Shown here piece after piece: positions 506 through 30,763 of a DNA stretch of 64,000 bases. The notes under the pieces were generated by a model. The model was not told where the DNA came from. It worked only from the letters and a program-made list of their open reading frames with translations, and made no database searches. Within the stretch, counting starts at the first letter, position 1; each line of letters starts with the position of its first letter. This stretch comes from Piromyces finnis finn. Lineage: Eukaryota; Fungi; Neocallimastigomycota. The stretch covers positions 95,191 through 159,190 of the forward strand of contig MCFH01000084.1 in NCBI GenBank assembly GCA_002104945.1, read 5' to 3'. The position numbers were made by a program, and so were the translations under genes.

Positions 506-2270
506 TTTTTTTTTTTTTTTTTTTTTTTTAACGGCATCAAATATTTTTAAACTTTATTATTAATTAAATTAAAATTATAATACATGTTATATAAAAAATT
601 AAAAATTAAAATAAAAATAAAATATTGTTTAAATAAACACAAATGAATAAAAATTGGGTATAATGTATTCTAGTAATTTTAATTAAAGTAAGAAAGCCAC
701 TATTATACTAAAGTATAATAATTGTATTTGACTTCCAATGGGACACCGAGCCAAAGATCAAAATTTTATCATGGGACAAAATTATGATCTCCATTGGTTG
801 CGCTGGCCCTCCTGGCCTGTCTTACTGTTTCTTCAGCATTGACGCTCTTGGATGTTGCTTCAAACCTTTTGAACATTGACCATTGCTGGCCAATAGCAAA
901 AGGCATGATTTTGGTTAGAAGTTCCGCGGTTACCGTCAAGAATGGTGTTCCTTCGTTAGTACCAGATTGAATCTGACGCTTACAAAGTTCTTTCCATTCC
1001 CTTGAATTGTAATTAATATTGTTAAAACTTCTTCCCCCAAAAAAGAATTTAAATATTTTACTGCACAGACTAGAATAATCATACACACTAATATTCACCG
1101 GATTATTAGAACTATTACTATCATTAACTAAATTACTATCTAAATTAGAATTATTATCTTCACTATTGCTATCATTACTAGTATTATTATTTCTATAACT
1201 ACTATTGTTATTATTACTATTTCTATTACTACTATTGTTATTATTACTATTGTTACTATTACTATTGTTATTACTACTATTGTTACTATTACTATTAATG
1301 TTATTACTATCTCTACTGATATTATCAATTTCATTATTATTGATAGGACTATTGGAATTACGTTGACTGAAAAAATTTAATAGCTGGACTATAGAATCAT
1401 AATGTTTAATACGGATATCTCTAAATGTTGGACAATCTAATAACCAATGTTTAATACTTTGATCTCCACACTTGCAACATGGACAGTAGTTAGGACAAAC
1501 TGGATCAACAAATTTGGCAGCTTTGGCAACTCTAGCATCCAACTTGTATCCGCTTCTTGCTTTCAATAGCCAGTAGAAGCCATAGGCAAACTCTGGGTAC
1601 TCATAACATAATTTAATAAAATCTTTAGTTTCAATAAATTTATTATCATCATAATATTGCGCTTTGATTGAATTCCCTTTGAGATCTTTCCAATAAAAGC
1701 TTTTAACTGCTTTAACATCTCCATGCTTCTTTAGTTTTTTATCAAGTGTCCTACTTGATTTGCACCACGTGTATTTTCTAAATTTAGGAATGTAATTGAC
1801 AAGGTATGAGATAATACAATTTGAGTTTTTCCATTTGTTAAAACATCTAACCTGAGCTAATGCACATTTGGCTGACAATGGAGGAATATTCAAATCTTTT
1901 GAAATAGAGTATAAAGATATAAACGATACAGCTTTATGAACTCCAGCAACCCATCGTATTCCTTTGTTAACATGCTTCTGAGCAATCCTAGACCTAGCTT
2001 TGTTGGATCCAAGTAATGGTGCAAAGTATGAAACTCTGCTAATCACTTGTGAGTTAAGTACTAGCTTTTTGAAGGGAATAGGAATATTAGGATTTCTTAA
2101 GAATTTACTGACTGAGAAAAGTCCTTTCAAATCCTTGTTATTAAGAGCTTTAATTACTGGTTTAAGGGACAAATTCTTATCAAATGGAACACCAAGATAA
2201 GTATAACAATCAGTAGTTGGAATGGGTTGTCCTGCTAAGTAAAATGTTGGATCTCTCTTGTTCTGATTTT
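506..2270 (-). mobile_element. Family A LINE copy E1, 5'-truncated
   Basis: Poly(T) 506-529 followed by the family 3' end aacggcatcaaatatt; ORF 769-2172 is the C-terminal third of the 1510-aa protein; similarity stops at ttctgatttt near 2270. Confidence 0.95.
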
Positions 2271-2272
2271 TT

Positions 2273-2359
2273 TTTTCTACTCTCTCAGTACCATGAGCAT
2301 GAGTAGAGCCCCTTGAGAAACTTCATTAATTAAATAATTGAAATCACGTTCCCAAGGGG
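2273..2359 (-). repeat. Diverged 5'-terminal LINE monomer
   Basis: ttctactctctcagtaccatgagcatgagtagagccccttgagaaac...cacgttcccaagggg matches the family A 5' monomer with several substitutions. Confidence 0.85.
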
Positions 2360-2817
2360 TTTTTTTTTTTTTTTTTTTTTTTTTAACGGCATCAAATATT
2401 ATAAACTTTATTATTAATTTAATTAAAATTATAATACATGTAATAAAAAATTAAAAAATAAAAATAAAAATAAAAAAAATATGTTTAAATAAACACAAAT
2501 GAATAAAAATTGGGTATAATGTATTCTAGTAATTTTAATTAAAGTAAGAAAGCCACTATCATACTAAAGTATAATAATTGTATTTGACTTCCAATGGGAC
2601 ACCGAGCCAAAGATCAAAATTTTGTCATGGAACAAAATTATGATCTCCATTGGTTGCGCTGGCCCTCCTGGCCTGTCTTACTGTTTCTTCAGCATTGACG
2701 CTCTTGGATGTTGCTTCAAACCTTTTGAACATTGTCCATTGCTGGCCAATAGCAAAAGGCATGATTTTGGTTAGAAGTTCCGCGGTTACCGTCAAGAATG
2801 GTGTTCCTTCGTTAGTA
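2360..2817 (-). mobile_element. Family A LINE copy E2, heavily 5'-truncated
   Basis: Poly(T) 2360-2384, 3' UTR and the last ~65 codons; flanked by cccaagggg at 2351-2359 and 2818-2826 (about 9-bp TSD). Confidence 0.93.
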
Positions 2818-3094
2818 CCCAAGGGGGTAGATTTTTTTTTTTTTTTTTTTTTTAACGGCATCAAATATTTTAAACTTTATTATTAATTTAATTAAAATTA
2901 TAATACATGTAATATAAAAAATTAAAAATTAAAATAAAAATAAAAAAAGCATGTTTAAATAAACACAAATGAATAAAATTTGGGTATAATGTATTCTAGT
3001 AATTTTAATTAAAGTAAGAAAGCCACTATCATACTAAAGTATAATAATTGTATTTGACTTCCAATGGGACACCGAGCCAAAGATCAAAATTTTA

Positions 3095-6000
3095 TCATGG
3101 ATCAAAATTATGATCTCCATTGGTTGCGCTGGCCCTCCTGGCCTGTCTTACTGTTTCTTCAGCATTGACGCTCTTGGATGTTGCTTCAAACCTTTTGAAC
3201 ATTGACCATTGCTGGCCAATAGCAAAAGGCATGATTTTGGTTAGAAGTTCCGCGGTTACCGTCAAGAATGGTGTTCCTTCATTAGTACCAGATTGAATCT
3301 GACGCTTACAAAGTTCTTTCCATTCCCTTGAATTGTAATTAATATTGTTAAAACTTCTTCCCCCAAGAAGGAATTTAAATATTTCACTGCACACACTAGA
3401 ATAATCATACACATTAATATTCACCGGATTATTAGAACTATTACTATCATTAACTAAATTACTATCTAAATTAGAATTATTATCTTCACTATTGCTATCA
3501 TTACTAATATTATTATTTCTATTATTGTTATTATTACTATTGTTACTATTACTATTGTTACTATTACTATTGTTACTATTACTATTGTTACTATTACTAT
3601 TAATGTTATTACTATCTCTACTGATATTATCAATTTCATTATTATAGATAGGACTATTGGAATTACGTTGACTGAAAAAATTTAATAGCTGGACTATGGA
3701 ATCATAATGTTTAATACGGATATCTCTAAATGTTGGACAATCTAATAACCAATGTTTAATACTTTGATCTCCACACTTGCAACATGGACAGTAGTTAGGA
3801 CAAACTGGATCAACAAATTTAGCAGCTTTGGCAACTCTAGCATCCAACTTGTATCCGCTTCTTGCTTTCAAGAGCCAGTAGAAGCCATAGGCAAACTCTG
3901 GGTACTCATAACATAATTTAATAAAATCTTTAGTTTCAATAAATTTATTATCATCATAATATTGCGCTTTGATTGAATTCCCTTTGAGATCTTTCCAATA
4001 AAAGTTTTTAACTGCTTTAACATCTCCATGTTTCTTTAATTTTTTATCAAGTGTCCTACTTGATTTGCACCACGTGTATTTTCTAAATTTAGGAATGTAA
4101 TTGACAAGGTGTGAGATAATACAATTTGAGTTTTTCCATTTGTTAAAACATCTAACCTGAGCTAACGCACATTTGGCTGACAATGGAGGAATATTCAAAT
4201 CTTTTGAAATAGAGTATAAAGATATAAACGATACAGCTTTATGAACTCCAGCAACCCATCGTATTCCTTTGTTAACATGCTTCTGAGCAATCCTAGACCT
4301 AGCTTTGTTGGATCCAAGTAATGGTGCAAAGTATGAAACTCTGCTAATCACTTGTGAGTTAAGTACTAGTTTTTTGAAAGGAATAGGAATATTAGGATTT
4401 CTTAAGAATTTACTGACTGAGAAAAGCCCTTTCAAAACCTTGTTATTAAGAGCTTTAATTACTGGTTTAAGGGACAGATTCTTATCAAATGGAACACCAA
4501 GATAAGTATAGCAATCAGTAGTTGGAATGGGTTGTCCTGCTAAGTAAAATGTTGGATCTCTCTTGTTCTGATTTTCTATTGATTCAGGACGAATCACCAT
4601 CGTTGAACATTTCTGGATACCAAATTCCATTTCATTATACAAGGCCCATTCATTAACTCTTCTAAGCATCTTTTTTAAGCATCCTCTTGTTGGAGCACAA
4701 ATAACTATATCATCTGCAAAAAGTCCACCACAGCATCGAGTGTCACCTAAACTGACTCCTAGATCTTCGCACTCTCTAAATATATCATTAATAAAGAGAT
4801 TAAAGAGAATAGGAGAAAGAGGGCATCCTTGACGGACTCCTTTCTTCACATCAAAAGATTTCGAGAATTGTCCATCTAATTTGACATTAGCCTTAGATGT
4901 TAAATATAAATTTTTGATAAATTGTAGACTCTTACCTCGGATTCCTAAACAATCTAATTTATGGAGAATATTACCGATTGGGACTGAATCGTATGCTTTC
5001 CTGAGATCTAAAAAGGCCAAATATGTCTCTTTATTATCTAATTGACGTCTACGGCATATTTCTTGGATTGAAATGAAAAGACTGATACTTTCTTCCTTTT
5101 TTCGAAAACCAAATTGTTCAGGTCTAATGAAATTATTCTTTAAACCATATTCTGAGATTCTAGTGGTGACAATTTTGGAAATCAACTTAATACCATTATT
5201 GATAAGTGATATACCTCGATAGATATCACAATCTGTCAAATCTCCCTTCTTAGGAATAGAAACAATACTGGATTCATTCCATGAGTTGGGGAAATCTCCA
5301 TCCCAAATACGGTTGAATAATTTAAGAATAAAATTTAAACCATGAGCATCATTATCTGAAGTAGTATTACCAGAAGAATTATTATCTGTAGCATTATTAG
5401 AATCATTACTTGATGGAATTAATGCTTTGTAAAATTCAATTGGAATACCATCCGGACCTGATGCTTTATAATTTGGAGTAGTGAGGATAGCTGACTTGAC
5501 TTCATCAATACTAATATCTTGGTTGATATCCCACTCATCAAGCATAGGAAGTGAAAAACGTTTATTCGTTGGTTCTTCATACCAATGCTCCAAATCAAGA
5601 CTTACACCACTTGGATCTGATGCAAGATTTTCGAAATGATCATGCCACACATCTAGTTGTTCTTCCGTAGCAACAACTAATTCTCCGTTTTTATTTTTAA
5701 TTGGTTGAGCAATAAAGAAAGAATCTTTTCCAATTTTTGCAGTTTTCTTGATCCATTTCCAGGCCTTCTTAGGATTATGACTCTTCATATACTCACATCC
5801 TGTTTTAATCCAATGAAGATATTCTTGCTTCCTAAATTCATTACATCTTTTGTGGATGTAATCAATGAGTTTACGGTAGATTTTAATTCTTTTAATAAAT
5901 TCATCTATATCATAAATTCTTTCTTTTTTAAATCTCTTATACAACTTCATTTTGATTTTTTGGAGATTAAAAAATTGTTGTGAAATATGAAATGAAGACT

Positions 6001-7618
6001 TTATAACATTATTTGCTGAGGTAATACTGAGCTCGTCTGCAATTGAAAAAGCAGTTGAAGTAAACTCTTTGGAAAGTTCATCTGTAGAAACATTAGGATC
6101 GTTGAATTTTGCTGAAAGTATTTGGAATTTATTATGACTGATAATAGATTCCTTTTCCTCAATACATTTTAATCTATTCCATTTCTGAATTTTCTTAGGA
6201 ACATTAAAGTCATTAGAAAAATCTTCCATAGGAATAATTTTACCATTAATAAGAAGTGGCTTATGGTCTGATACAGGATAAAAATTATTTATAAATGATC
6301 CTGAGTGAATAAGATCTTTCATCTTCGAATTGATAAGAGCATGGTCAATGTCGGAAGATTGATCACCTCGAGTCCAAGAGATAGTAGACCCTCTAAGCGG
6401 AAGAATTTCCCAATCTCCTAATCCATTAGTTGATAACCAGTTGGATAATTTTACTTTAGACATATTAAAATCACCAACAAGAATCGATGGATGGGATGAA
6501 TGAGTTTGTAACCACAAGCGAGCTTCTAACTTTGCATGATCAACATAGATGTTGTGATGACTATGAGGCATATAAACATTACCAATCGAGCATTTGAATC
6601 TATTCCAGAGACTAAAAGTATAAATAGAAATAATATACTTTCCAGAGAAGTTTTCAAGTGAGGCTTGACACGAATTGTGAAAACCTAAATATAAACCTCT
6701 CATTCCCGGAACTGATTCGTCAGCTTTCTTGAAAAAGTGTCTATAGTTTCGCAAAGTAACACGACAAGGATAATCTGTATTCGATCCAGAACCATTACCA
6801 GTTTCTTGGAAACATAAAAATAATGGTTTGAAAATAGCTGTGAAATAGCTAATACTATCTCTCTTTTCGTGATTCCACCCATTGGTGTTCCAACTAAGAC
6901 AAAAAGAAAAGTTATCAGGCTTGTTGGATGAGGAAGAATCGTTGCTATTATTATTATTATTAAAGTCATCGTTATTAATGGATGATGCATCAGAGGAATA
7001 AGTAGAACTATTACTAGATGGCTGTGAAACTGAAGAACTATCAACTATTGAACTGTTATCAGAGTTGATAGAGCTATTAGAATTAATTGTTGAATGTTGA
7101 GATTGAAATTGTGTTTGCTGTAGATCTGGAATATTTTCATGATTGGAAACTTGTTGAAGATCTTGTTGAAGATCTAGTTGAAGATCGGATTGTTGATGAG
7201 ATTGTTGAACTGATTGTTGAAATGATTGTTGAATAGAATGTTGATGTTTATTAGAAACTAAAATTTTACGTTTGAGAGTGGAAAAAGTGTATTTGTGATT
7301 CCTTCTACTACGAGCTGAAAAGGAAATTGAGGTAACTGAAAGTTTCTTCTTTAACATGTGTAAGATTTTAATACAATCTTTCGATGAACCATGAACCTTG
7401 ACTAAGAAAAAGTGATCATTGAAAGTCTGAAAATATTTAACACTAATAACTGAATTAAATTTATCTTCTAGAATAACCTCGAGTTTTTCCCATAGCATAT
7501 TTACTGACCATGATCGAATACCACGGATAAAGAAGGAGCGAATATCATCTAAGGGGATACCATAAGACCGGGTACCACGTCTGATATAATTCTTGTCTTT
7601 AATATAAAGGACTGACAT
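3095..7618 (-). CDS. Non-LTR retrotransposon polyprotein (APE endonuclease, reverse transcriptase, CCHC zinc knuckle), 1507 aa
   Basis: APE motifs SWNTNG, FQET, GNVYMP, VGDFN, DIDH, SDHKP; RT motifs YRGISL, QFGFR, DLRKAYDSV, GVRQGCPLSP, FADD, YLG; C-terminal CPCC-x-KHWLLDC. Confidence 0.97.
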   Translation of the reverse strand: MSVLYIKDKNYIRRGTRSYGIPLDDIRSFFIRGIRSWSVNMLWEKLEVILEDKFNSVISVKYFQTFNDHFFLVKVHGSSKDCIKILHMLKKKLSVTSISFSARSRRNHKYTFSTLKRKILVSNKHQHSIQQSFQQSVQQSHQQSDLQLDLQQDLQQVSNHENIPDLQQTQFQSQHSTINSNSSINSDNSSIVDSSSVSQPSSNSSTYSSDASSINNDDFNNNNNSNDSSSSNKPDNFSFCLSWNTNGWNHEKRDSISYFTAIFKPLFLCFQETGNGSGSNTDYPCRVTLRNYRHFFKKADESVPGMRGLYLGFHNSCQASLENFSGKYIISIYTFSLWNRFKCSIGNVYMPHSHHNIYVDHAKLEARLWLQTHSSHPSILVGDFNMSKVKLSNWLSTNGLGDWEILPLRGSTISWTRGDQSSDIDHALINSKMKDLIHSGSFINNFYPVSDHKPLLINGKIIPMEDFSNDFNVPKKIQKWNRLKCIEEKESIISHNKFQILSAKFNDPNVSTDELSKEFTSTAFSIADELSITSANNVIKSSFHISQQFFNLQKIKMKLYKRFKKERIYDIDEFIKRIKIYRKLIDYIHKRCNEFRKQEYLHWIKTGCEYMKSHNPKKAWKWIKKTAKIGKDSFFIAQPIKNKNGELVVATEEQLDVWHDHFENLASDPSGVSLDLEHWYEEPTNKRFSLPMLDEWDINQDISIDEVKSAILTTPNYKASGPDGIPIEFYKALIPSSNDSNNATDNNSSGNTTSDNDAHGLNFILKLFNRIWDGDFPNSWNESSIVSIPKKGDLTDCDIYRGISLINNGIKLISKIVTTRISEYGLKNNFIRPEQFGFRKKEESISLFISIQEICRRRQLDNKETYLAFLDLRKAYDSVPIGNILHKLDCLGIRGKSLQFIKNLYLTSKANVKLDGQFSKSFDVKKGVRQGCPLSPILFNLFINDIFRECEDLGVSLGDTRCCGGLFADDIVICAPTRGCLKKMLRRVNEWALYNEMEFGIQKCSTMVIRPESIENQNKRDPTFYLAGQPIPTTDCYTYLGVPFDKNLSLKPVIKALNNKVLKGLFSVSKFLRNPNIPIPFKKLVLNSQVISRVSYFAPLLGSNKARSRIAQKHVNKGIRWVAGVHKAVSFISLYSISKDLNIPPLSAKCALAQVRCFNKWKNSNCIISHLVNYIPKFRKYTWCKSSRTLDKKLKKHGDVKAVKNFYWKDLKGNSIKAQYYDDNKFIETKDFIKLCYEYPEFAYGFYWLLKARSGYKLDARVAKAAKFVDPVCPNYCPCCKCGDQSIKHWLLDCPTFRDIRIKHYDSIVQLLNFFSQRNSNSPIYNNEIDNISRDSNNINSNSNNSNSNNSNSNNSNSNNSNNNNNRNNNISNDSNSEDNNSNLDSNLVNDSNSSNNPVNINVYDYSSVCSEIFKFLLGGRSFNNINYNSREWKELCKRQIQSGTNEGTPFLTVTAELLTKIMPFAIGQQWSMFKRFEATSKSVNAEETVRQARRASATNGDHNFDP

Positions 7619-9572: not shown

Positions 9573-12500
9573 TCATGGGACAAAATTATGATCTCCATTG
9601 GTTGCGCTGGCCCTCCTGGCCTGTCTTACTGTTTCTTCAGCATTGACGCTCTTGGATGTTGCTTCAAACCTTTTGAACATTGACCATTGCTGGCCAATAG
9701 CAAAAGGCATGATTTTGGTTAGAAGTTCCGCGGTTACCGTCAAGAATGGTGTTCCTTCGTTAGTACCAGATTGAATCTGACGCTTACAAAGTTCTTTCCA
9801 TTCCCTTGAATTGTAATTAATATTGTTAAAACTTCTTCCCCCAAGAAGGAATTTAAATATTTTACTGCACACACTAGAATAATCATACACATTAATATTC
9901 ACCGGATTATTAGAACTATTACTATCATTAACTAAATTACTATCTAAATTAGAATTATTATCTTCACTATTGCTATCATTACTAATATTATTATTTCTAT
10001 TACTACTATTGTTATTATTACTATTGTTACTATTACTATTGTTATTATTACTATTGTTACTATTACTATTAATATTATTACTATCTCTACTGATATTATC
10101 AATTTCATTATTATTGATAGGACTATTGGAATTACGTTGACTGAAAAAATTTAATAGCTGGACTATGGAATCATAATGTTTAATACGGATATCTCTAAAT
10201 GTTGGACAATCTAATAACCAATGTTTAATACTTTGATCTCCACACTTGCAACATGGACAGTAGTTAGGACAAACTGGATCAACAAATTTGGCAGCTTTGG
10301 CAACTCTAGCATCCAACTTGTATCCGCTTCTTGCTTTCAATAGCCAGTAGAAGCCATAGGCAAACTCTGGGTACTCATAACATAATTTAATAAAATCTTT
10401 AGTATCAATAAACTTATTATCATCATAATATTGCGCTTTGATTGAATTCCCTTTGAGATCTTTCCAATAAAAGTTTTTAACTGCTTTAACATCTCCATGT
10501 TTCTTTAGTTTTTTATCAAGTGTCCTACTTGATTTGCACCACGTGTATTTTCTAAATTTAGGAATGTAATTGACAAGGTGTGAGATAATACAATTTGAGT
10601 TTTTCCATTTGTTAAAACATCTAACCTGAGCTAATGCACATTTGGCTGACAATGGAGGAATATTCAAATCTTTTGAAATAGAGTATAAAGATATAAACGA
10701 TACAGCTTTATGAACTCCGGCAACCCATCGTATTCCTTTGTTAACATGCTTCTGTGCAATCCTAGACCTGGCTTTGTTGGATCCAAGTAATGGTGCAAAG
10801 TATGAAACTCTGCTAATCACTTGTGAGTTAAGTACTAGCTTTTTGAAGGGAATAGGAATATTAGGATTTCTTAAGAATTTACTGACTGAGAAAAGTCCTT
10901 TCAAAACCTTGTTATTAAGAGCTTTAATAACTGGTTTAAGGGACAGATTCTTATCAAATGGAACACCAAGATAAGTATAACAATCAGTAGTTGGAATGGG
11001 TTGTCCTGCTAAGTAAAATGTTGGATCTCTCTTGTTCTGATTTTCTATTGATTCAGGACGAATCACCATCGTTGAACATTTCTGGATACCAAATTCCATT
11101 TCATTATACAAGGCCCATTCATTAACTCTTCTAAGCATCTTTTTTAAGCATCCTCTTGTTGGAGCACAAATAACTATATCATCTGCAAAAAGTCCACCAC
11201 AGCATCGAGTGTCACCTAAACTGACTCCGAGATCTTCACACTCTTTAAATATATCATTAATAAAGAGATTAAAGAGAATAGGAGAAAGAGGGCATCCTTG
11301 ACGGACTCCTTTCTTCACATCAAAAGATTTCGAGAATTGTCCATCTAATTTGACATTAGCCTTAGATGTTAAATATAAATTTTTGATGAATTGTAAACTC
11401 TTACCTCGGATTCCTAAACAATCTAATTTATGGAGAATATTACCGATTGGGACTGAATCGTATGCTTTCCTGAGATCTAAAAAGGCCAAATATGTCTCTT
11501 TATTATCTAATTGACGTCTACGGCATATTTCTTGGATTGAAATGAAAAGACTGATACTTTCTTCCTTTTTTCGAAAACCAAATTGTTCAGGTCTAATGAA
11601 ATTATTCTTTAGACCATATTCTGAGATTCTAGTGGTGACAATTTTGGAAATCAACTTAATACCATTATTGATAAGTGATATACCTCGATAGTTATCACAA
11701 TCTGTCAAATCTCCCTTCTTAGGAATAGAAACAATACTGGATTCATTCCATGAGTTGGGGAAGTCTCCATCCCAAATACGGTTGTATAATTTAAGAATAA
11801 AATTTAAACCATAAGAATCATTATCTGAAGTGGTATTACCGGAAGAATTATTATCTGTAGCATTATTAGAATCATTACTTGATGGAATTAATGCTTTGTA
11901 AAATTCAATTGGAATACCATCCGGACCTGATGCTTTATAATTCGGAGTAGAGAGGATAGCTGACTTGACTTCATCAATACTAATATCTTGGTTGATATCC
12001 CATTCATCAAGCATAGGGAGTGAAAAACGTTTATTCGTTGGTTCTTCATACCAATGCTCCAAATCAAGACTTACGCCACTTGGATCTGATGCAAGATTTT
12101 CGAAATGATCATGCCACACATCTAGTTGTTCTTCCGTAGCAACAACTAACTCTCCATTTTTATTTTTAATTGGTTGAGCAATAAAGAAGGAATCTTTTCC
12201 AATTTTTGCAGTTTTCTTGATCCATTTCCAGGCCTTCTTAGGATTATGACTCTTCATATACTCACATCCTGTTTTAATCCAATGAAGATATTCTTGTTTC
12301 CTAAATTCATTACATCTTTTGTGGATGTAATCAATGAGCTTACGGTAGATTTTAATTCTTTTAATAAATTCATCTATATCATAAATTCTTTCTTTTTTAA
12401 ATCTCTTATACAACTTCATTTTGATTTTTTGGAGATTAAAAATTTGTTGTGAAATATGAAATGAAGACTTTATAACATTATTTGCTGAGGTAATACTGAG

Positions 12501-14099
12501 CTCGTCTGCAATTGAAAAAGCAGTTGAAGTAAATTCTTTGGAAAGATCATCTGTAGAAACATTAGGATCGTTGAATTTTGCTGAAAGTATTTGGAATTTA
12601 TTATGACTGAGAATAGATTCCTTTTCCTCAATACATTTTAATCTATTCCATTTCAGAATTTTCTTAGGAACGTTAAAGTCATTAGAAAAATCTTCCATAG
12701 GAATAATTTTACCATTAATAAGAAGTGGCTTATGGTCTGATACAGGATAAAAATTATTTATAAATGATCCTGAGTGAATAAGATCTTTCATCTTCGAATT
12801 GATAAGAGCATGGTCAATGTCGGAAGATTGTTCACCTCGAGTCCAAGAGATAGTAGACCCTCTAAGCGGAAGAATTTCCCAATCTCCTAATCCATTAGTT
12901 GATAACCAGTTGGATAATTTTACTTTAGACATATTAAAATCACCAACAAGAATCGATGGATGGGATGAATGAGTTTGTAACCACAAGCGAACTTCTAACT
13001 TTGCATGATCAACATAGATGTTGTGATGACTATGAGGCATATAAACATTTCCAATCGAGCATTTGAATCTATTCCAGAGACTAAAAGTATAAATAGAAAT
13101 AATATACTTTCCAGAGAAGTTTTCAAGTGAGGCTTGACACGAATTGTGAAAACCTAAATATAAACCTCTCATTCCCGGAACTGATTCGTCAGCTTTCTTG
13201 AAAAAGTGTCTATAGTTTCGCAAAGTAACACGACAAGGATAATCTGTATTCGATCCAGAACCATTACCAGTTTCTTGGAAACATAAGAATAATGGTTTGA
13301 AAATAGCTGTGAAATAGCTAATACTATCTCTCTTTTCATGATTCCACCCATTGGTGTTCCAACTAAGACAAAAAGAAAAGTTATCAGGCTTGTTGGATGA
13401 GGAAGAATCGTTGCTATTATTATTATTATTAAAGTCATCGTTATTAATGGATGATGCATCAGAGGAATAAGTAGAACTATTACTAGATGGCTGTGAAACT
13501 GAAGAACTATCAACTATTGAACTGTTATCAGAGTTGATAGAACTATTAGAATTAATTGTTGAATGTTGAGATTGAAATTGTGTTTGCTGTAGATCTGGAA
13601 TATTTTCATGATGGGAAACTTGTTGAAGATCCTGTTGAAGATCTCGTTGAAGATCGGATTGTTGATGAGATTGTTGAACTGATTGTTGAACTGATTGTTG
13701 AAATGATTGTTGAATAGAATGTTGATGTTTATTAGAAACTAAAATTTTACGTTTGAGAGTGGAAAAAGTGTATTTGTGATTCCTTCTACTACGAGCTGAA
13801 AAGGAAATTGAGGTAACTGAAAGTTTCTTCTTTAACATGTGTAAGATTTTAATACAATCTTTTGATGAACCATGAACCTTGACTAAGAAAAAGTGATCAT
13901 TGAAAGTTTGAAAATATTTAACACTAATAACTGAATTAAATTTATCTTCTAGAATAACCTCGAGTTTTTCCCATAGCATATTTACTGACCATGATCGAAT
14001 ACCACGGATAAAGAAGGAGCGAATATCATCTAAGGGGATACCATAAGACCGGGTACCACGTCTGATATAATTCTTATCTTTAATATAAAGGACTGACAT
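9573..14099 (-). CDS. Non-LTR retrotransposon polyprotein (APE-RT-CCHC), 1508 aa
   Basis: Same APE, RT and CCHC motifs as 3095-7618; uninterrupted ORF. Confidence 0.97.
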   Translation of the reverse strand: MSVLYIKDKNYIRRGTRSYGIPLDDIRSFFIRGIRSWSVNMLWEKLEVILEDKFNSVISVKYFQTFNDHFFLVKVHGSSKDCIKILHMLKKKLSVTSISFSARSRRNHKYTFSTLKRKILVSNKHQHSIQQSFQQSVQQSVQQSHQQSDLQRDLQQDLQQVSHHENIPDLQQTQFQSQHSTINSNSSINSDNSSIVDSSSVSQPSSNSSTYSSDASSINNDDFNNNNNSNDSSSSNKPDNFSFCLSWNTNGWNHEKRDSISYFTAIFKPLFLCFQETGNGSGSNTDYPCRVTLRNYRHFFKKADESVPGMRGLYLGFHNSCQASLENFSGKYIISIYTFSLWNRFKCSIGNVYMPHSHHNIYVDHAKLEVRLWLQTHSSHPSILVGDFNMSKVKLSNWLSTNGLGDWEILPLRGSTISWTRGEQSSDIDHALINSKMKDLIHSGSFINNFYPVSDHKPLLINGKIIPMEDFSNDFNVPKKILKWNRLKCIEEKESILSHNKFQILSAKFNDPNVSTDDLSKEFTSTAFSIADELSITSANNVIKSSFHISQQIFNLQKIKMKLYKRFKKERIYDIDEFIKRIKIYRKLIDYIHKRCNEFRKQEYLHWIKTGCEYMKSHNPKKAWKWIKKTAKIGKDSFFIAQPIKNKNGELVVATEEQLDVWHDHFENLASDPSGVSLDLEHWYEEPTNKRFSLPMLDEWDINQDISIDEVKSAILSTPNYKASGPDGIPIEFYKALIPSSNDSNNATDNNSSGNTTSDNDSYGLNFILKLYNRIWDGDFPNSWNESSIVSIPKKGDLTDCDNYRGISLINNGIKLISKIVTTRISEYGLKNNFIRPEQFGFRKKEESISLFISIQEICRRRQLDNKETYLAFLDLRKAYDSVPIGNILHKLDCLGIRGKSLQFIKNLYLTSKANVKLDGQFSKSFDVKKGVRQGCPLSPILFNLFINDIFKECEDLGVSLGDTRCCGGLFADDIVICAPTRGCLKKMLRRVNEWALYNEMEFGIQKCSTMVIRPESIENQNKRDPTFYLAGQPIPTTDCYTYLGVPFDKNLSLKPVIKALNNKVLKGLFSVSKFLRNPNIPIPFKKLVLNSQVISRVSYFAPLLGSNKARSRIAQKHVNKGIRWVAGVHKAVSFISLYSISKDLNIPPLSAKCALAQVRCFNKWKNSNCIISHLVNYIPKFRKYTWCKSSRTLDKKLKKHGDVKAVKNFYWKDLKGNSIKAQYYDDNKFIDTKDFIKLCYEYPEFAYGFYWLLKARSGYKLDARVAKAAKFVDPVCPNYCPCCKCGDQSIKHWLLDCPTFRDIRIKHYDSIVQLLNFFSQRNSNSPINNNEIDNISRDSNNINSNSNNSNNNNSNSNNSNNNNSSNRNNNISNDSNSEDNNSNLDSNLVNDSNSSNNPVNINVYDYSSVCSKIFKFLLGGRSFNNINYNSREWKELCKRQIQSGTNEGTPFLTVTAELLTKIMPFAIGQQWSMFKRFEATSKSVNAEETVRQARRASATNGDHNFVP

Positions 14100-15059: not shown

Positions 15060-15784
15060 AATATTATTACTATCTCTACTGATATAGCATGAGTAGACCC
15101 CCTTGAGAAACTACATTTATTAAATAAATGAAGGCACGTTCCCAAGAGGGACAAGGGGGTAGAAACAATGAAAGCAGAGTTCTATTTCAAAGAAAAGGAA
15201 CATTCCAAATTTATTAAAAATTAATAAGACATTTCCAAATATTATTGCTTAAACAAAAAACTCTTAAAACACAAATCGATCATATCTAAAAACCTAATTA
15301 TTAAGCCTTTTAAAAAAATGCATTTCTCACATACAGCCAAATTATTAAATACTCAATTTTAAATCCACTTAAAAAAAATTATAATTAAACAAAAGCATTT
15401 AATTTACAACATAACCAAAAAATACCTATATATATTTTAATTTTTATCTTTATTAAAATTATATTAATAGAATTATTTCTATTTTTTCTATTTCAATACA
15501 TTATTTTTAAGAATTTCAAATAATTTATTATTATTATATAAAATTCATTATTATTTTATATGTATTATTACTTAATTAAGAATATAATTTCAATAATTTT
15601 TAATTTATATGAAATATATATTTTGTATTTACACTTTCGGATTATTAATTATTATAATCCATAATTTTAAACTAAATTAATTTAGGATTGCTTACTAATC
15701 AACAAATTTAAACTAATTTAAGTTAATTTAAGCATTTTTTTAGTTGCTTTATGATCATTTCATTCATACATTTATGCGATAAAT

Positions 15785-17224
15785 TTATGCGTCATCAGCC
15801 TTGTGGTTACGCTTTTCAATTTCCTTGTTGATTTCATCAATCTTTTCATCAGTTAATGAATAGAAGGAAATGATAATCATCATAACAATCATTAAAATAG
15901 CTGGAATAATAGCAACATTCCAACGAATACATTCCTTAGTAGAATCGGCTTGGTGCTTCATCTTATAGAACCAACCAACGGAAGTATTGTGGATATTCAT
16001 ACAACAGAAAGCAGTAACGAAGTAGAAAGCAATAACACGTAATGGTCCGTTACGAATAAATTCAATCCATAAATCACTAACCTTAACATTTTCAGTTTCC
16101 TTGTCTTCCATAACAACACGTTCCTTAGACTTAACGAAACAGAATACAAGAAGTAAGAAACCAACAACAGCGTAAAGAATCATAGCAGAGAACCAAGCCT
16201 TTGAATTAGTAGTGTAACCACTACCACCATCATTAGCTTCAAGGTCTGCATCGTAGTGGAAGAAGTAAAGGAGCCATCCTGGAATAGCACCACCAAGAGC
16301 AAAACCGGCCTTGAAGAAAATACCAGTAAGAGCATTGATAATACCGGCAATACGACGACCAGTAGTATATTCAGCATAAGAAATAACTTCTGGAACAATA
16401 GCCCACATGTAACCAGTAACAGTGGTAAGACCAGTTGACTTGATAAAGTTGGCAACTAACATCCAGACACTCTTATCAGAGTCGGCAAGACCCATTCTAC
16501 TGAAGATGTATAATAAGGCATAACCGATAATACCAATAACACCAAAGGAATAGAATAATCCCTTCTTACCAGTGAACTTCTTAATGTATGGAACAAATGG
16601 CATGATGACAAAACCTGGAAGAGCACCAATAAAGTTGAATAAAACAACATTCCAATCAATAGCTTGTTTGGAGAAGAGACCAGCAACAATTGGGAAACCA
16701 GTCCAGACAAATAAACCACCAATGTTAGCCATAGTCATACGAATAGAGGTAAGAACTGTAATTTCTTGAGTATCTCTAGTCATTGAAGCATTTAAGGCAC
16801 CGTATGGAACGTTAGTAAGAGTGTAACACATTTGTAATAAAGTGTAGGTAATAGCGGCGTAAGTAATACTACCCTTGAAAATATCCCAGTAACAAAGAAT
16901 AGCAAGAACACATAATGGGAAACCAGCTGTAACTAAATAGGAACGGTACTTACCCCAACGTGGGTTGTGCTTATCAACAAAGGCACCAACAAATGGATCC
17001 CAAATAACATCAAGTAAACGAACAACAAGCATAAGTGCACCTGATACAGCTGTTGCCTTCTTTGAATCATTACCAATAATATATACATTAGTGTAGTAGA
17101 ATGCAATGAAACCACTAACATTTTGGTAAATAAAGTTTTGTGCCATATCACCAGCACCATAACCAATTCTGGTTAACCATGAAAGCTTGAAAAAGCCATT
17201 GGCTTCGTCCTTTACTGTACTCAT
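15785..17224 (-). CDS. GPH-family (MelB/XynT-like) MFS sugar or oligosaccharide:cation symporter, copy 1, intronless, permuted helix order
   Basis: 479 aa; motifs GYGAGDMAQN, DVIWDPFVGAFVD, WGKYRSY, TNVPYGAL, TSIRM, GKK, EVISYAEYTTGRRIAG, KERV, YSLT; 12 hydrophobic segments. Confidence 0.93.
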   Translation of the reverse strand: MSTVKDEANGFFKLSWLTRIGYGAGDMAQNFIYQNVSGFIAFYYTNVYIIGNDSKKATAVSGALMLVVRLLDVIWDPFVGAFVDKHNPRWGKYRSYLVTAGFPLCVLAILCYWDIFKGSITYAAITYTLLQMCYTLTNVPYGALNASMTRDTQEITVLTSIRMTMANIGGLFVWTGFPIVAGLFSKQAIDWNVVLFNFIGALPGFVIMPFVPYIKKFTGKKGLFYSFGVIGIIGYALLYIFSRMGLADSDKSVWMLVANFIKSTGLTTVTGYMWAIVPEVISYAEYTTGRRIAGIINALTGIFFKAGFALGGAIPGWLLYFFHYDADLEANDGGSGYTTNSKAWFSAMILYAVVGFLLLVFCFVKSKERVVMEDKETENVKVSDLWIEFIRNGPLRVIAFYFVTAFCCMNIHNTSVGWFYKMKHQADSTKECIRWNVAIIPAILMIVMMIIISFYSLTDEKIDEINKEIEKRNHKADDA

Positions 17225-19803
17225 TTTTTTTCTTAAATTAACTTAAATGTAAAACTATTAGTTTAAATTTTAATTTTTTACTTAAATTATTATCTTAAAA
17301 TATTAAGTAATTTTATTACTTAATTTATTTTATTGAATATTAAAAAAATAGTCTTTTCGTTTTACTTTTATACTTCTTTTTTATTAAAAAACTTTTGTAT
17401 ATATTACATTATTAATATAATATATATTTATTATTAAAAAAATAAATTAATTATTGTGTAATATATTAAAATTTACACAAATATTAACATAATATTTTAT
17501 AATAAATTATAAAATTATATATGTTTAAAAATATATTTTTTAAAGTTAAATATACCTTATTATGTTAAATAGCACAATAATGAAAAATGATGGTTTATAA
17601 ATAATAAATATAATTTATAATATCTATAAAAAAATATACATTTACACATATCATTTTTATAATTGCAATAATAAAAATAATTTTATAAATATTTATTCAT
17701 TTATTCTAATCTTTGATTAATAATTAAGTTAAAACTTACAAATCTGCTCCTATATTCAACTAATATTCAATCACATAGTAAATAGAGTTTATTTTTGGAA
17801 ACTTTAATTTATTATTTATTAAATTTTTAATTTATAATATTAAGCACTTTTTATTAAAATGAGTAAGGTCTATTCATTATTTTTATTAAATTGAATAATA
17901 GAAATGTAGAAAAATAAGTTATTTAAACGATATATTTATCTTTTAAATATATATACAATATATATTGTATAATTAATTAAAATAAATATTGAAAAATTAA
18001 TCAAATATTGAATATATATGAATATATAAATCTTATTGAATGTAAATAAATTATTTATCTAAAAATAGAAAATAATTACACAATACAAAATTAAATTGAT
18101 GTAATATATATTATAACATTGATGAAATTTAATGTAAATAATTATTCTCATATATTACTTATAATAAATCATATATACATATAAAAAAAAAATTAACATC
18201 ATTATATTATTAACAGATTAGATCTTAATATTATTCTATTATTTTAAATGCTAACATGCATATATTTTTAAAATTTAATTCGATTGATAGTTATTATATC
18301 TATAGTATTACATAAGAATAAGAAAATACATTTATTTTAATATTTTATGAAAAATCAAAGAAATTTAGTTTTTATTAATTTAAAACCTAAGAAGTGAATT
18401 ACTTAATAAGAATCATTAATATAAAAATATTTATAATAAGCATTGTAACATTGTAACTCCACAATTATATTTATGGTAATATAAGTTTACTAATGAAGTA
18501 AATTTTTTTTTACTTTCTTAAAATAATTAATAACAATATTAATTCAAAAAAAGTTTATTTTTATAAATTTTTAATTTAAAATTTAATTAGTGATTGTAAA
18601 CTCTATTATATATTAAATCAGATCAAATCAAATGTCATTATTGGATGAACAAAATAATAAGGGAATTTAATCAAAATGTAAACTTTATTTTATATTAAGA
18701 AATTGTTTTAATTCATCCTTATTTTATGTTAAATTAAACTTTGCTAATCAAGATAAATAAAGATATATGTATAACGGTAAAGTAATGATTTAATAATAAA
18801 TAAACTTTTTACTTTAATTTTAAAATGATATATTTAATAATTACGTAACTATGGTTAATGGATGAATTATTATTATTATAATCATAATGTAAAAAAAAAG
18901 TAAACTGTAATTAAAGAAAAATTAAGATTTTCTTTGATTTATAAAAAATAAATGTAATAAAGAAGGTAACTATAAGGAAAATGTTTATATGAATCTTTTT
19001 TTATGAAATAATGTAATATATTTTATTAATTAATAATTAGTAATGTACAACTAATATTTATCAAAATTCCTATCCTCAAATATATTAATACATTGGCGTT
19101 TATTTTGTTCATTCTCCAGTCAAATAATAAAATATAAAAGAAAAAAGAAATAAAAATTTTATTAATTTAATAATGAATCATTTTAGGAAATATTTCATAA
19201 AATTAAAAATTGTGTTAATAAATACAATTTATTATATTTTAAAAATTATTGGAGAGGTTTTTTTAAGAAATTTAGAAAATTATGTTAATTTTTTTATTAA
19301 ATAGAATATTCAAAAGAATTTTGTTAATGTTTATTTAAAAATTTTGTTAATTAATAAATATTGCATTTATAATAAAAGCATTTGAATAAACACTTTATTT
19401 CCTTTTCATGGAGATATATTAAAATAATCATACTTAAAGCAAATGTTTAACAATAGTATTATCATTTTAAAAAAGATTAAAATTATGACTTTAATCGATA
19501 CTTGTTAAAGTTAAAATTTTATTAAAAAGTAGTAACCTCCTAGATATAGTTAGATAAATTAAATTTAAAAATTTTTTATGGAAAAATTAAAAAGAAATTC
19601 AATTAAAGAAACTTGATTTTAATTATTTTTTTAATTTTGTTATATTCTTTGTTATTATAAATATTAAGAAGTAAAAAAAAAAAATAAAGTTCTTTTCACT
19701 TTTTTTTTTTTTTTTTTTTTTTAATTAAAAAAATAATATTTATATTGCCATTTTGGAGGAATGAGGAATTTATTGTTATTATATAATAAAGAAAATAAAA
19801 ATT

Positions 19804-23160: not shown

Positions 23161-23718
23161 TTAAAGATAATAGATATAATAATTTCAAAAGATATTTTAT
23201 TTATAATTTCATTTTTAAATACTGGAAACATTCAAAATAATATCATTTATAGAAAAGCAACTACAACAGCATTTACTCATTATACTACTAACCAGATTTT
23301 TAAAAAATAAGACTTATATCATAATTAATACAAAACACATTATTATATATTTTTAATAATTACTATATTTTATTATTTTATTATATATAATATTACCATT
23401 ATAAAATATATATTTTTAATTAATATTATTATTTTATTTTTATTATATTTATTTAAAATATCTTAATAATAGTCTATAATATATAATATATTATATTTTA
23501 TCTTTTTAATAATATTTAACATTACATTACTTTTTTTTTTTTTGTTATTTACATTTTTCATTATTCTTATTAATTTAAACTAATTTAAATGATTTAATTT
23601 TTTATTATTATTTTCTATCATTATATTCATCATTATTAAACTAATTTAAATTTAAGTTAATTTAAGCATTTTTTTAGTTGCTTTATGATCATTTCATTCA
23701 TACATTTATGCGATAAAT

Positions 23719-25158
23719 TTATGCGTCATCAGCCTTGTGGTTACGCTTTTCAATTTCCTTGTTGATTTCATCAATCTTTTCATCAGTTAATGAATAGAAG
23801 GAAATGATAATCATCATAACAATCATTAAAATAGCTGGAATAATAGCAACATTCCAACGAATACATTCCTTAGTAGAATCGGCTTGGTGCTTCATCTTGT
23901 AGAACCAACCAACGGAAGTATTGTGGATATTCATACAACAGAAAGCAGTAACGAAGTAGAAAGCAATAACACGTAATGGTCCGTTACGAATAAATTCAAT
24001 CCATAAATCACTAACCTTAACATTTTCAGTTTCCTTGTCTTCCATAACAACACGTTCCTTAGACTTAACGAAACAGAATACAAGAAGTAAGAAACCAACA
24101 ACAGCGTAAAGAATCATAGCAGAGAACCAAGCCTTTGAATCAGTAGTATAACCACTACCACCATCCTTAGCTTCAAGGTCTGCATCGTAGTGGAAGAAGT
24201 AAAGGAGCCATCCTGGAATAGCACCACCAAGAGCAAAACCGGCCTTGAAGAAAATACCAGTAAGAGCATTGATAATACCGGCAATACGACGACCAGTAGT
24301 ATATTCAGCATAAGAAATAACTTCTGGAACAATAGCCCACATGTAACCAGTAACAGTGGTAAGACCAGTTGACTTGATAAAGTTGGCAACTAACATCCAG
24401 ACGCTCTTATCAGAGTCGGCAAGACCCATTCTACTGAAGATGTATAATAAGGCATAACCGATAATACCAATGACACCAAAGGAATAGAATAATCCCTTCT
24501 TACCAGTGAACTTCTTAATGTATGGAACAAATGGCATGATGACAAAACCTGGAAGAGCACCAATAAAGTTGAATAAAACAACATTCCAATCAATAGCTTG
24601 TTTGGAGAAGAGACCAGCAACAATTGGGAAACCAGTCCAGACAAATAAACCACCAATGTTAGCCATAGTCATACGAATAGAGGTAAGAACTGTAATTTCT
24701 TGAGTATCTCTAGTCATTGAAGCATTTAAGGCACCGTATGGAACGTTAGTAAGAGTGTAACACATTTGTAATAAAGTGTAGGTAATAGCGGCGTAAGTAA
24801 TACTACCCTTGAAAATATCCCAGTAACAAAGAATAGCAAGAACACATAATGGGAAACCAGCTGTTACTAAATAGGAACGGTACTTACCCCAACGTGGGTT
24901 GTGCTTATCAACAAAGGCACCAACAAATGGATCCCAAATAACATCAAGTAAACGAACAATAAGCATAAGTGCACCTGATACAGCTGTTGCCTTCTTTGAA
25001 TCATTACCAATAATATATACATTAGTGTAGTAGAATGCAATGAAACCACTAACATTTTGGTAAATAAAGTTTTGTGCCATATCACCAGCACCATAACCAA
25101 TTCTGGTTAACCATGAAAGCTTGAAAAAGCCATTGGCTTCGTCCTTTACTGTACTCAT
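23719..25158 (-). CDS. GPH-family MFS symporter, copy 2
   Basis: 479 aa; differs from copy 1 at 3 residues (V67I, N331K, N340D). Confidence 0.93.
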   Translation of the reverse strand: MSTVKDEANGFFKLSWLTRIGYGAGDMAQNFIYQNVSGFIAFYYTNVYIIGNDSKKATAVSGALMLIVRLLDVIWDPFVGAFVDKHNPRWGKYRSYLVTAGFPLCVLAILCYWDIFKGSITYAAITYTLLQMCYTLTNVPYGALNASMTRDTQEITVLTSIRMTMANIGGLFVWTGFPIVAGLFSKQAIDWNVVLFNFIGALPGFVIMPFVPYIKKFTGKKGLFYSFGVIGIIGYALLYIFSRMGLADSDKSVWMLVANFIKSTGLTTVTGYMWAIVPEVISYAEYTTGRRIAGIINALTGIFFKAGFALGGAIPGWLLYFFHYDADLEAKDGGSGYTTDSKAWFSAMILYAVVGFLLLVFCFVKSKERVVMEDKETENVKVSDLWIEFIRNGPLRVIAFYFVTAFCCMNIHNTSVGWFYKMKHQADSTKECIRWNVAIIPAILMIVMMIIISFYSLTDEKIDEINKEIEKRNHKADDA

Positions 25159-26269
25159 TTTTTTTTCTTAAATTAACTTAAATGTAAAACTATTAGTTTA
25201 AAATTTAACTTTTTTTTAATTATTTTATATACTACTTAAATTATTTTATTTTTTTAAATATTAAGTAATTATATTACTTATTATTTATGTTTTTTAAAAT
25301 TCAGTCTTCTTTTTTCGCTTTTATACATTTCAACTGTTGTATAATTTTATTTAATAATTTTATTAAAAAACAATAACAAAAAATAATATTTAATTTTTAT
25401 TATAAATTTAAATTAAATATATATTGTATTTATATTAATAATTAATTTATATAATGTAATTATAATAATATTTAATTTATATTGTATTACATAGGAATAG
25501 TAAACTTACATTGTACTACATATTAAAATTTACACATTAATATAATAAATTAAGATATTTTTAATATAGAAATTTTTAAAATAAAAAAGTAATAATGTGG
25601 AGTTTAATATTATAATACCAAAAAACAAAAGTACAAAAGTTAAATTTAAGGAACATATTAAAATATTCTAAATATATAATGTATACAATGTCTATATTTA
25701 TAGAAAAAGTTTATTGTATTAAAAGTATTAATTAATATTTTGTAGATGGTAGATGGAAATGATTTTTTGATAGATTGCACAAAAAATGTAATATAAAATA
25801 ATATATAAATAAAAATATAGAATATATAAAACAATAATTAGATTTAATCTAAAATTCTATTTATCATTTATTATTATCTTTTTAATATTATCATAAATAA
25901 AAGATAAATAGAATATTAATTAGTAAAGTGTATAATGTACATAAAATTAATATGCCTTCGTTTATAATTTGTTAATAATGATATGCATTTATGCCTATTT
26001 AAATTTGAACTATTTTTATATTTTTTCTATGACATGAATGATGAAATGATAAAATGATGCATGACATATCATTTCATAAATACTTGAATCATAGGGGTTA
26101 AGTATAATTAAACTTTATCACATTATTTATAAAATAAAATATAATTATAACAATATCAAATTAAGTTATATTTATATAAGATTCTAATACTTTTACCTTT
26201 TTTATATTATTTTTTAATTTATTATATATTACTACTAACAAAGATATTATAATGCAAATGATGGTTATC

Positions 26270-29278: not shown

Positions 29279-30763
29279 CTATACATATAATGGAGAAAGA
29301 GTTTTAACAACCTTGCAGTATTCTTCGTAAGCCTTGTCATAGACAGCAACATTTTCGGCAATTGGGTTAGCGCTCTTTGATTCATCAAGCTTAATGTGTT
29401 CAGTGCAAAGCTTGACAATATCACATTCTCCCTTTTGGCTGTTAAGACACCATAAAGCTTGAACAGCACCACCAAGAGCAGCAGCTTCATCTAAAAGTGG
29501 AACTCTAATTGGAAGGTTCATGATATCAGCAGCAATTTGTCTCCAAAGTGGGGATTTAGAACCACCACCAATAAGACGAATTTCTTTTGGCTTGAAACCT
29601 AACTTACGGAAAGCATCTAATCCACCACGCATAGCGAATACAGCGGATTCGAAACTAGCACGAGTAATGTTAGCACGGTTGGTGTTAGCAGAGGTAAGAC
29701 CAGTAATGCTAGCACGACCATTTGGTAAGTTTGGAGTTCTTTCACCATTGAAGAATGGAATAACTAAAACACCTTCACTACCGCATGGAGATTTGGCAGC
29801 TTCTTCATTAAGTTGTTTAATATCCATTTGGAAAAGATCACGAACAAATTCAGTAGCAACAGTACAGTTCATGGTACAAAGTAATGGAAGCCAACCACCA
29901 GTAGAGGAACAGAAACCACTTAAACCGTTAGCTGGGTCAGCAATTGGCTTGTCACTGTAACCGTAAAGAGTACCAGAAGTACCCATAGACATAGTAAGGA
30001 AACCATCAGCAACAGTACCAGTACCGACGGCACCCATCATATTATCACCACCACCAGCAGAAACTGGAATATCGGCTGGAATACCATAAGCCTTAGCAGC
30101 TTCAGCATTAACCTTACCAGCTGGAGCACTTGGTTCAATTAACTTTGGAAGTAAACCTAAAAGCTTTGGATCAATAATATCACAAATCTTCTTTGACCAG
30201 CAACGGTTCTTAGAATCAAAGAGAGCAGTACCAGAGGCATCACCATATTCCATAACGTAATCACCAGTAAGTTTCCAGTTTAAGTAATCGTGTGGAAGCA
30301 TGATGTATTTTAAAGCATCAAAAGCTTCTGGCTTGTTACGCTTGAGCCAAAGGATCTTTGGAGCAGTAAAACCAGTAAGCATAAGGTTTCCAAGAGCATC
30401 AACAACTTCGTTTTCACCACCAGCAGCTTCAGTGATGATCTTACATTCTTCAACTGTTGAAGTATCACACCAAAGCTTGATGTTGTATAAGGCCTTACCA
30501 TCAGCACCAAGTGGAACAAAACCGTGTTGTTGTCCGGAAATACCAATAGCTTCAACAGTCTTTTTGTTTTCAGCACTGAGTTTACCGAAACAAACTTCTA
30601 AACCCTTATCAAACCATTCAGTAGTTTGTTCACGAGTACCATCACTTTCGGAAATTAATTCCATTGGGCAACTGGCAGTTTCAATAATTTCCTTCTTTTC
30701 ATAGTCGTATATAACGACTTTCATACTTTGTGTTCCAAGATCAATTCCAGCAACAGTTCTCAT
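29279..30763 (-). CDS. xylB: Xylulokinase (FGGY family), 494 aa, intronless
   Basis: Starts MRTVAGIDLGTQSMK at the ATG 30763; FGGY motifs SGQQHG, LWCD, TAPKILW, DASGT, GGGDN, SMGTSG, FFNGERTP, GGGSKS. Confidence 0.95.
   Translation of the reverse strand: MRTVAGIDLGTQSMKVVIYDYEKKEIIETASCPMELISESDGTREQTTEWFDKGLEVCFGKLSAENKKTVEAIGISGQQHGFVPLGADGKALYNIKLWCDTSTVEECKIITEAAGGENEVVDALGNLMLTGFTAPKILWLKRNKPEAFDALKYIMLPHDYLNWKLTGDYVMEYGDASGTALFDSKNRCWSKKICDIIDPKLLGLLPKLIEPSAPAGKVNAEAAKAYGIPADIPVSAGGGDNMMGAVGTGTVADGFLTMSMGTSGTLYGYSDKPIADPANGLSGFCSSTGGWLPLLCTMNCTVATEFVRDLFQMDIKQLNEEAAKSPCGSEGVLVIPFFNGERTPNLPNGRASITGLTSANTNRANITRASFESAVFAMRGGLDAFRKLGFKPKEIRLIGGGSKSPLWRQIAADIMNLPIRVPLLDEAAALGGAVQALWCLNSQKGECDIVKLCTEHIKLDESKSANPIAENVAVYDKAYEEYCKVVKTLSPLYV

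Follow-up and report, generated by a model that had tools for sequence, protein, structure and literature searches.

A GPH-family MFS symporter of the anaerobic gut fungus Piromyces finnis carries its TM6-7 block behind TM11, and its gene very probably originated in bacteria and reached the fungus by horizontal transfer. No family of secondary transporters is larger than the MFS, in which the order of helices along the chain is treated as fixed. In the protein described here, encoded in the 64,000-nucleotide stretch of fungal DNA that we analysed (the window), the region from TM6 to TM11 reads TM8-9-10-11 and then TM6-loop-TM7, with TM1-5 and TM12 unmoved. The product would be a functional GPH symporter, most likely for xylosides or xylo-oligosaccharides. 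We are inclined to regard it as the first documented natural non-circular permutation of TM helices within the MFS fold, the protein being functional, abundant among the Prevotellaceae of rumen and gut, and strongly expressed in anaerobic fungi.

Helix order of the window protein

The gene is a single open reading frame of 479 amino acids with its frame intact. Family profiles placed its product in the GPH family (TC 2.A.2) above curated cutoffs: Pfam MFS_2 (PF13347) matched at 2.3e-69 (234.4 bits against a cutoff of 27) and TIGR00792 gph ('GPH:cation symporter') at 4.5e-80 (269.4 bits against 231.35), each in four separate stretches. The first and best profile stretch equated residues 21-186 with profile positions 1-163 of 427 only. 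Judged by sequence, the protein is a member of this known family but does not have the helix order that the family is assumed to have.

When the protein was compared by BLASTP with the canonical Prevotella protein P0270, four non-collinear segments were obtained, with E-values far beyond chance: query 1-195 with subject 1-190 (9e-72), 187-383 with 280-468 (5e-44), 329-444 with 182-299 (block C; 2.8e-32, 47% identity) and 416-474 with 414-472 (1.6e-13). The canonical Escherichia coli GPH genes melB, yicJ, uidB and yagG served as further references, and UidB, YagG and YicJ showed the same pattern more weakly; non-collinear matches to canonical GPH proteins had been predicted in a preliminary description of this DNA. 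Against the MelB chains of the PDB, residues 14-177 corresponded to MelB 3-162, and the next alignment, a weak one, paired residues 196-325 with MelB 272-397 and so jumped some 90 residues. A bacterial relative, Prevotella P0057, matched UidB in the segments 12-172/5-163, 208-330/282-398, 343-423/187-268 and 418-472/395-449.

To classify helix order, we made HMMs of blocks A, B, C and D (Table 1) from the query family and ran them on every collected protein. The order A-B-C-D was found in the window protein and 157 others, giving 158 full-length proteins; A-C-B-D was found in UidB, YagG and 218 further relatives, and A-C-B was detected in YicJ. Motifs within the window protein start at residues 219 (GKK), 285 (EYTTGRR), 367 (KERV) and 391 (RNGPL), in agreement with the first reading of the sequence. 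BLASTP segments and block HMMs together show the order TM1-5, TM8-11, TM6-7, TM12 that had been proposed. The chain does not follow the sequential TM1-12 order, with two six-helix halves and one central loop. It is also not circularly permuted in the sense of having new termini and its old termini joined; blocks A and D are in their usual places. As read from these alignments, two adjacent internal blocks have changed places, a non-circular permutation of the protein. The swap amounts to a circular permutation of an internal segment, in which each helix keeps its in/out orientation. Of the new links, TM5-TM8 and TM11-TM6 are as foreseen in the preliminary description, which had counted two; TM7-TM12 is a third.

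The window holds a second permuted copy of the gene, and the claim that both copies share one order and an intact frame holds: 476 of 479 residues are common to the two, and 5 of their 8 nucleotide differences are synonymous. The duplicated unit around them is 93.5% identical, flanks included, and those flanks are extremely AT-rich (GC 13-19% in 2-kb windows).

Table 1 Features of the window. Positions count from the first letter of the window; residues are those of the 479-residue protein.
Feature	Position	Strand	Residues and remarks	Basis
Permuted GPH/MFS_2 sugar:cation symporter, whole gene	15785..17224	-	no intron	ORF, profile matches, collinear RNA contigs
Block A, TM1-TM5, canonical place	16661..17191	-	12-188; TM2 Asp pair D72/D76 and R162	HMM and BLASTP
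New link TM5-TM8, outer side	16649..16669	-	186-192; 5 non-helical residues in model	AlphaFold2
Block B, TM8-TM11, moved forward	16247..16648	-	193-326; GKK loop, EY..G.R loop and K305	HMM and BLASTP
New link TM11-TM6, outer side	16205..16261	-	322-340; about 19 residues	AlphaFold2
Block C, TM6, KERV central loop and TM7, behind TM11	15959..16213	-	338-422	HMM, BLASTP and model
New link TM7-TM12, outer side	15947..15967	-	420-426; 7 residues	AlphaFold2
Block D, TM12 and C-terminal helix, canonical place	15803..15943	-	428-474	HMM and BLASTP
Second permuted copy	23719..25158	-	99% identical to the first	Comparison of the two window ORFs
Duplicated unit around both copies, ~1.87 kb	15701-17522 and 23639-25482		coordinates approximate	Alignment
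FGGY-family sugar kinase, xylulokinase-like	29279-30835	-	518 aa	Window ORF
Xylose isomerase-like TIM-barrel ORF	34902-36215	+	437 aa	Window ORF
GH43	48265-49245	+		Window ORF
LINE-like retroelement ORF with reverse-transcriptase domain	3095-7618	-	one of three of about 1,507-1,516 aa, around the sugar genes	
LINE-like retroelement ORF with reverse-transcriptase domain	9573-14099	-	one of three of about 1,507-1,516 aa, around the sugar genes	
LINE-like retroelement ORF with reverse-transcriptase domain	37925-42475	+	one of three of about 1,507-1,516 aa, around the sugar genes	
LINE-like retroelement ORF with reverse-transcriptase domain	60077-62761	-	894 aa, around the sugar genes	

The kinase, the isomerase-like ORF and the GH43 gene near the transporters resemble a fungal chromosomal neighbourhood for the use of pentoses and xylosides. 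The GH43 product is 46% identical (2e-108) to that of L006:9465-10496, a gene directly downstream of a permuted transporter in a Prevotella MAG.

Permuted and hybrid genes in bacteria and fungi

The 158 permuted full-length proteins were mostly from rumen and gut Prevotellaceae, so the survey of bacterial homologues that had been suggested did find the same order there. A large set of permuted proteins from Prevotella, Prevotellaceae and Bacteroidaceae is ~56% identical to the window protein over 98% of its length. On the fungal side the permuted order was present in Piromyces and Anaeromyces proteins, and also in many sequences from JGI whose contigs have the size of an mRNA (about 1.4-2 kb). 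The bacterial genes stand in xylan loci: behind the P0057 gene come three GH43 genes and an esterase, and a hybrid two-component regulator is close by; the P0443 gene has GH10 and GH43 behind it and GH67 upstream. From the gene context (GH10, GH43, xylose isomerase, xylulokinase), the putative substrate is a xyloside or xylo-oligosaccharide.

Equivalent xylan loci house two canonical Prevotellaceae clades, P0270/P0272/P0285 and P0383/P0455. The P0383/P0455 cluster has 3,724 members, and the canonical form was found in the genomes of Segatella copri, S. sinensis and Hoylesella loescheii. The permuted clade and the two canonical clades are roughly equidistant, with 69-80% identity per block among bacterial sequences and 52-60% between the canonical clades and the fungal permuted proteins. 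GH10, GH43, GH67 and the hybrid two-component regulator are neighbours of both forms; unlike the canonical clades, which run TM1-12, the permuted proteins have TM6-loop-TM7 behind TM11. A tblastn-based scan of genome contigs, whose first sequence was a 14-helix protein that favours collinear canonical genes, kept 80 loci, all 80 of them canonical, and returned no permuted locus.

In a backbone tree the fungal permuted sequences formed one clade (99-100 SH-aLRT) adjoining Prevotella P0057. Because the fungal sequences make a single clade beside or inside Prevotella and the gene has no intron, it looks to have been acquired horizontally by fungi from bacteria, already permuted, and then amplified in the fungus. 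The GH43 gene may have come along with the transporter gene in one transfer. The preliminary description had noted that the same order in bacterial donors would make the swap inherited and not fungal. Prevotellaceae do have this order, and on the present sequences the swap is bacterial, arising in Prevotellaceae and inherited by the fungus. The rearrangement would thus have taken place in a tight group of xylan-locus transporters within Prevotellaceae, with a per-block identity of about 70-78%, followed by horizontal transfer to anaerobic gut fungi and amplification there.

Four collected proteins have 14 helices in the order A-C-B-C-D (P0027, P0092, P0101 and P0332). Were they surviving duplication intermediates, the permuted form would have arisen by loss of the first TM6-7 copy, and several of their properties are what such intermediates should have: both TM6-7 copies are present, the first of them runs into the canonical TM7-TM8 loop, two samples yielded contigs that encode P0101 identically, and P0332 is without a near-identical parent among the sampled sequences. 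We nevertheless consider this unlikely, and dropped the 14-helix proteins as evidence when a second canonical clade and mismatch profiles exposed three of them as hybrids. P0092 is nearly identical over residues 1 to ~317 to the abundant canonical clade P0371/P0412 and has 0 mismatches to permuted P0443 from ~320 to 561; over nucleotides 1094-4292 (3.2 kb) of its contig, which take in the downstream GH10 gene, DNA identity to the P0443 locus is 99.4%. In P0027, canonical P0270 continues into a permuted tail of the P0074 type; P0101 agrees with canonical P0412 at every position up to residue ~300. All four are single-member clusters on contigs of 2-6 kb, whereas membership of the parent clusters runs into the thousands at most. 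The AlphaFold2 model of P0092 was also poor (pLDDT 70, pTM 0.58, with one helix of each copy below 50), and was left out of structure searches for its low confidence.

The permuted protein P0352 is likewise a mosaic, with a canonical-clade block A. From their match profiles, P0027, P0092, P0101 and P0352 arose where a canonical and a permuted gene crossed over within the conserved block B, and such hybrid genes are either natural recombinants or metagenome assembly chimeras. The genes for P0092, P0101 and P0332 are carried on contigs L005, L011, L012 and L010. Early trees, which had seemed to favour the intermediates, were distorted by the 14-helix mosaics. Among the collected homologues, no reliable duplication intermediate was found.

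Predicted fold and direction of the swap

An AlphaFold2 model of the window protein, made with 51 homologues, reached a pLDDT of 84.6 and a pTM of 0.83. It has 12 long TM helices, plus loop helices and a C-terminal helix, and so differs from the 14-TM MFS proteins; both helices of block C are predicted with a pLDDT of about 89-97. Using VIA-align, 358 residues of the model superposed on MelB (Z 23.8). This number equals the summed length of blocks A, B and D, which fits ten helices aligned in sequence order with TM6-7 excluded by the sequential alignment. Foldseek comparisons with solved MelB and with AlphaFold models of canonical GPH proteins gave TM-scores of 0.42-0.62, and each side of the alignments carried ~80-100 additional gap columns, which corresponds in length to block C. 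The functional residues of MelB, which form its cation and sugar sites, have counterparts: D55 and D59 (TM2), R149 (TM5) and K377 (TM11) align with D72, D76, R162 and K305. In the alignment of 51 homologues, D76 is conserved to at least 90% and the other three do not vary. Identity between canonical and permuted bacterial clades is 80/73.5/74.5/73% for blocks A/C/B/D, and block C ranges from 72 to 75% between them. The moved block is as conserved as B and D, which suggests that it is under the same constraint as the rest of the protein. The earlier expectation that the fold can survive the swap thus draws on two kinds of evidence, the confident model and the conservation of sequence.

The relocated helices might still not occupy the canonical TM6 and TM7 positions, whether through altered packing or because the helix after TM5 takes the place of TM6, and the modest TM-scores that sequential aligners give against canonical GPH models (0.42-0.62) could be read in this way. 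This seems to us improbable, a little more so than the survival of intermediates. A new environment should speed divergence, yet block C is 73-75% identical across canonical and permuted clades, like B and D. By sequence reading TM6 of the window protein is uniformly hydrophobic and TM7 has polar residues, as expected for a peripheral helix and a cavity helix, respectively. The superposition of ten helices on MelB (358 residues) leaves two empty positions to fill. Conservation, helix character and the ten-helix superposition together lead us to infer that the moved helices are in their usual TM6 and TM7 positions. With all helices in their usual MFS places, the N and C halves would be joined by three linkers and not one: TM5-TM8, TM11-TM6 and the old TM6-TM7 central loop. 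The first two would be new tethers on the outer face.

We take the direction of change to be from canonical to permuted because all other GPH proteins examined are canonical. The opposite reading is that the permuted order is ancestral in this Prevotellaceae subfamily and that two canonical clades regained theirs, for example by recombination. Rooting of a concatenated tree on distant canonical outgroups did indeed place the two canonical Prevotella clades inside permuted sequences, and with all rows included an AU test marginally rejected a single origin of the permuted order (p-AU 0.035). When the mosaic P0352 and two long-branch rows were removed, a single origin was no longer rejected (p-AU 0.36). 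Fungal sequences, P0123 and P0125 are on long branches that the outgroup probably attracts, and the nesting of canonical clades is probably due to long-branch attraction and mosaics. An exact reversion of the block swap is also mechanistically improbable, and, set against the canonical order of every other GPH protein examined, ancestral permutation appears very unlikely. As a guide to the order of events the rooted tree was confounded by the long fungal branches and by recombination, which is evident among these genes.

For a change from canonical to permuted, the route may have begun with a tandem duplication of TM6-TM11 inside the gene, after which the outer redundant parts were lost; alternatively, a copy of TM6-7 may have been inserted in the TM11-12 loop and the original deleted. 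Motifs at the junctions fit a copy-then-delete route, although they are only suggestive. The permuted clade and the second canonical clade both have 'LPKD' before block C, an 'LP' is left at the permuted A|B junction, and the '..QTP-LA(Q/E)EGI' lead-in to TM12 is retained behind the inserted block.

RNA contigs from four RNA or probable-RNA runs cover positions 15705-17243 without joints, and a 1,479-nt metatranscriptome contig is collinear with the ORF; the preliminary description had named a different helix order in cDNA as the result that would speak against it, and the RNA contigs keep the order of the ORF. The probability that this order is a mere product of faulty assembly or annotation of the fungal genome is negligible, given two copies within the window, collinear RNA contigs from four runs, and the same order in 158 proteins from independent sources that include NCBI records of Piromyces, Anaeromyces and Prevotella.

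Word depth in the contigs of the RNA runs was 10^4-10^5 over the ORF and about 0 in its flanks. The contigs suggest that the transporter transcript is among the most abundant in those small runs, although their type is given as 'RNA?' and expression is poorly measured by contig depth.

Relation to known transporters and implications

MelB, a melibiose:Na+ symporter, is the structural type of the GPH family. The window protein resembles it (PDB 7L16, 9OLD, 4M64) in the superposed fold and the four functional residues described above; it departs from the canonical order of MelB at the jump opening at residue 196, and sequence identity in the structural alignments is 14-19%. The best structural match in Swiss-Prot was YnaJ of Bacillus subtilis (P94488; 27% identity), which we take to be the protein known as XynP, encoded beside xynB. 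Like YnaJ, UidB, YagG and YicJ, which are glycoside/xyloside symporters encoded next to glycosidases, the permuted transporters would serve the uptake of such sugars. Unlike UidB, YagG and YicJ, they have the permuted order, and structural comparison with these proteins gave TM-scores of 0.43-0.61 with gaps the size of block C.

Some known MFS proteins already depart from the standard chain layout. A 2021 Chemical Reviews survey of the MFS gives 14-TM proteins (for example, PepTSt) and the 11-TM ENT1 as deviations from 12 TM helices (PMC8154325). In those proteins helices are added or lost, whereas the window protein keeps 12 and changes their order. No word starting with 'permut' occurs in the text of that review (PMC8154325).

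Closer in spirit is the 'evolutionary mix-and-match' hypothesis of rearranged triple-helix repeats in the MFS (Madej and Kaback 2013, cited in PMC8154325). In both cases helix units are reordered within the MFS fold. The hypothesis builds on distant structural comparison of three-helix repeats, whereas the TM6-loop-TM7 unit straddles two repeats and both domains, and its displacement is shown by sequence homology (47% for residues 329-444 against P0270, and 72-75% between bacterial clades). Mix-and-match has reportedly been disputed by Vastermark and Saier.

The preliminary description knew of no non-circular permutation of this kind in an MFS protein, and our literature search on MFS permutation and rearrangement found none either. 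We found no published account of a permuted helix order in the MFS, GPH or anaerobic-fungal transporter literature, in a search whose coverage left out most subscription-journal papers, so that an earlier account is possible.

For sequence analysis, the consequence is that collinear alignment, Pfam domain calls and sequential structure searches under-score permuted proteins or split them. The permuted transporter is also a candidate xylo-oligosaccharide importer for the engineering of pentose-using yeast. If the proposed arrangement is true, three linkers tie together the two rocking halves of this symporter, and TM6-7 are made and inserted only after TM8-11. The permuted protein and its canonical sisters, at 69-80% identity, would then form a ready-made pair for folding questions. 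They open the question of how much weight helix order has in membrane insertion and folding, and that of how two extra inter-domain tethers on the outer face affect the rocker-switch cycle. They also bear on the debated point of whether helix units of the MFS can be reordered in evolution.
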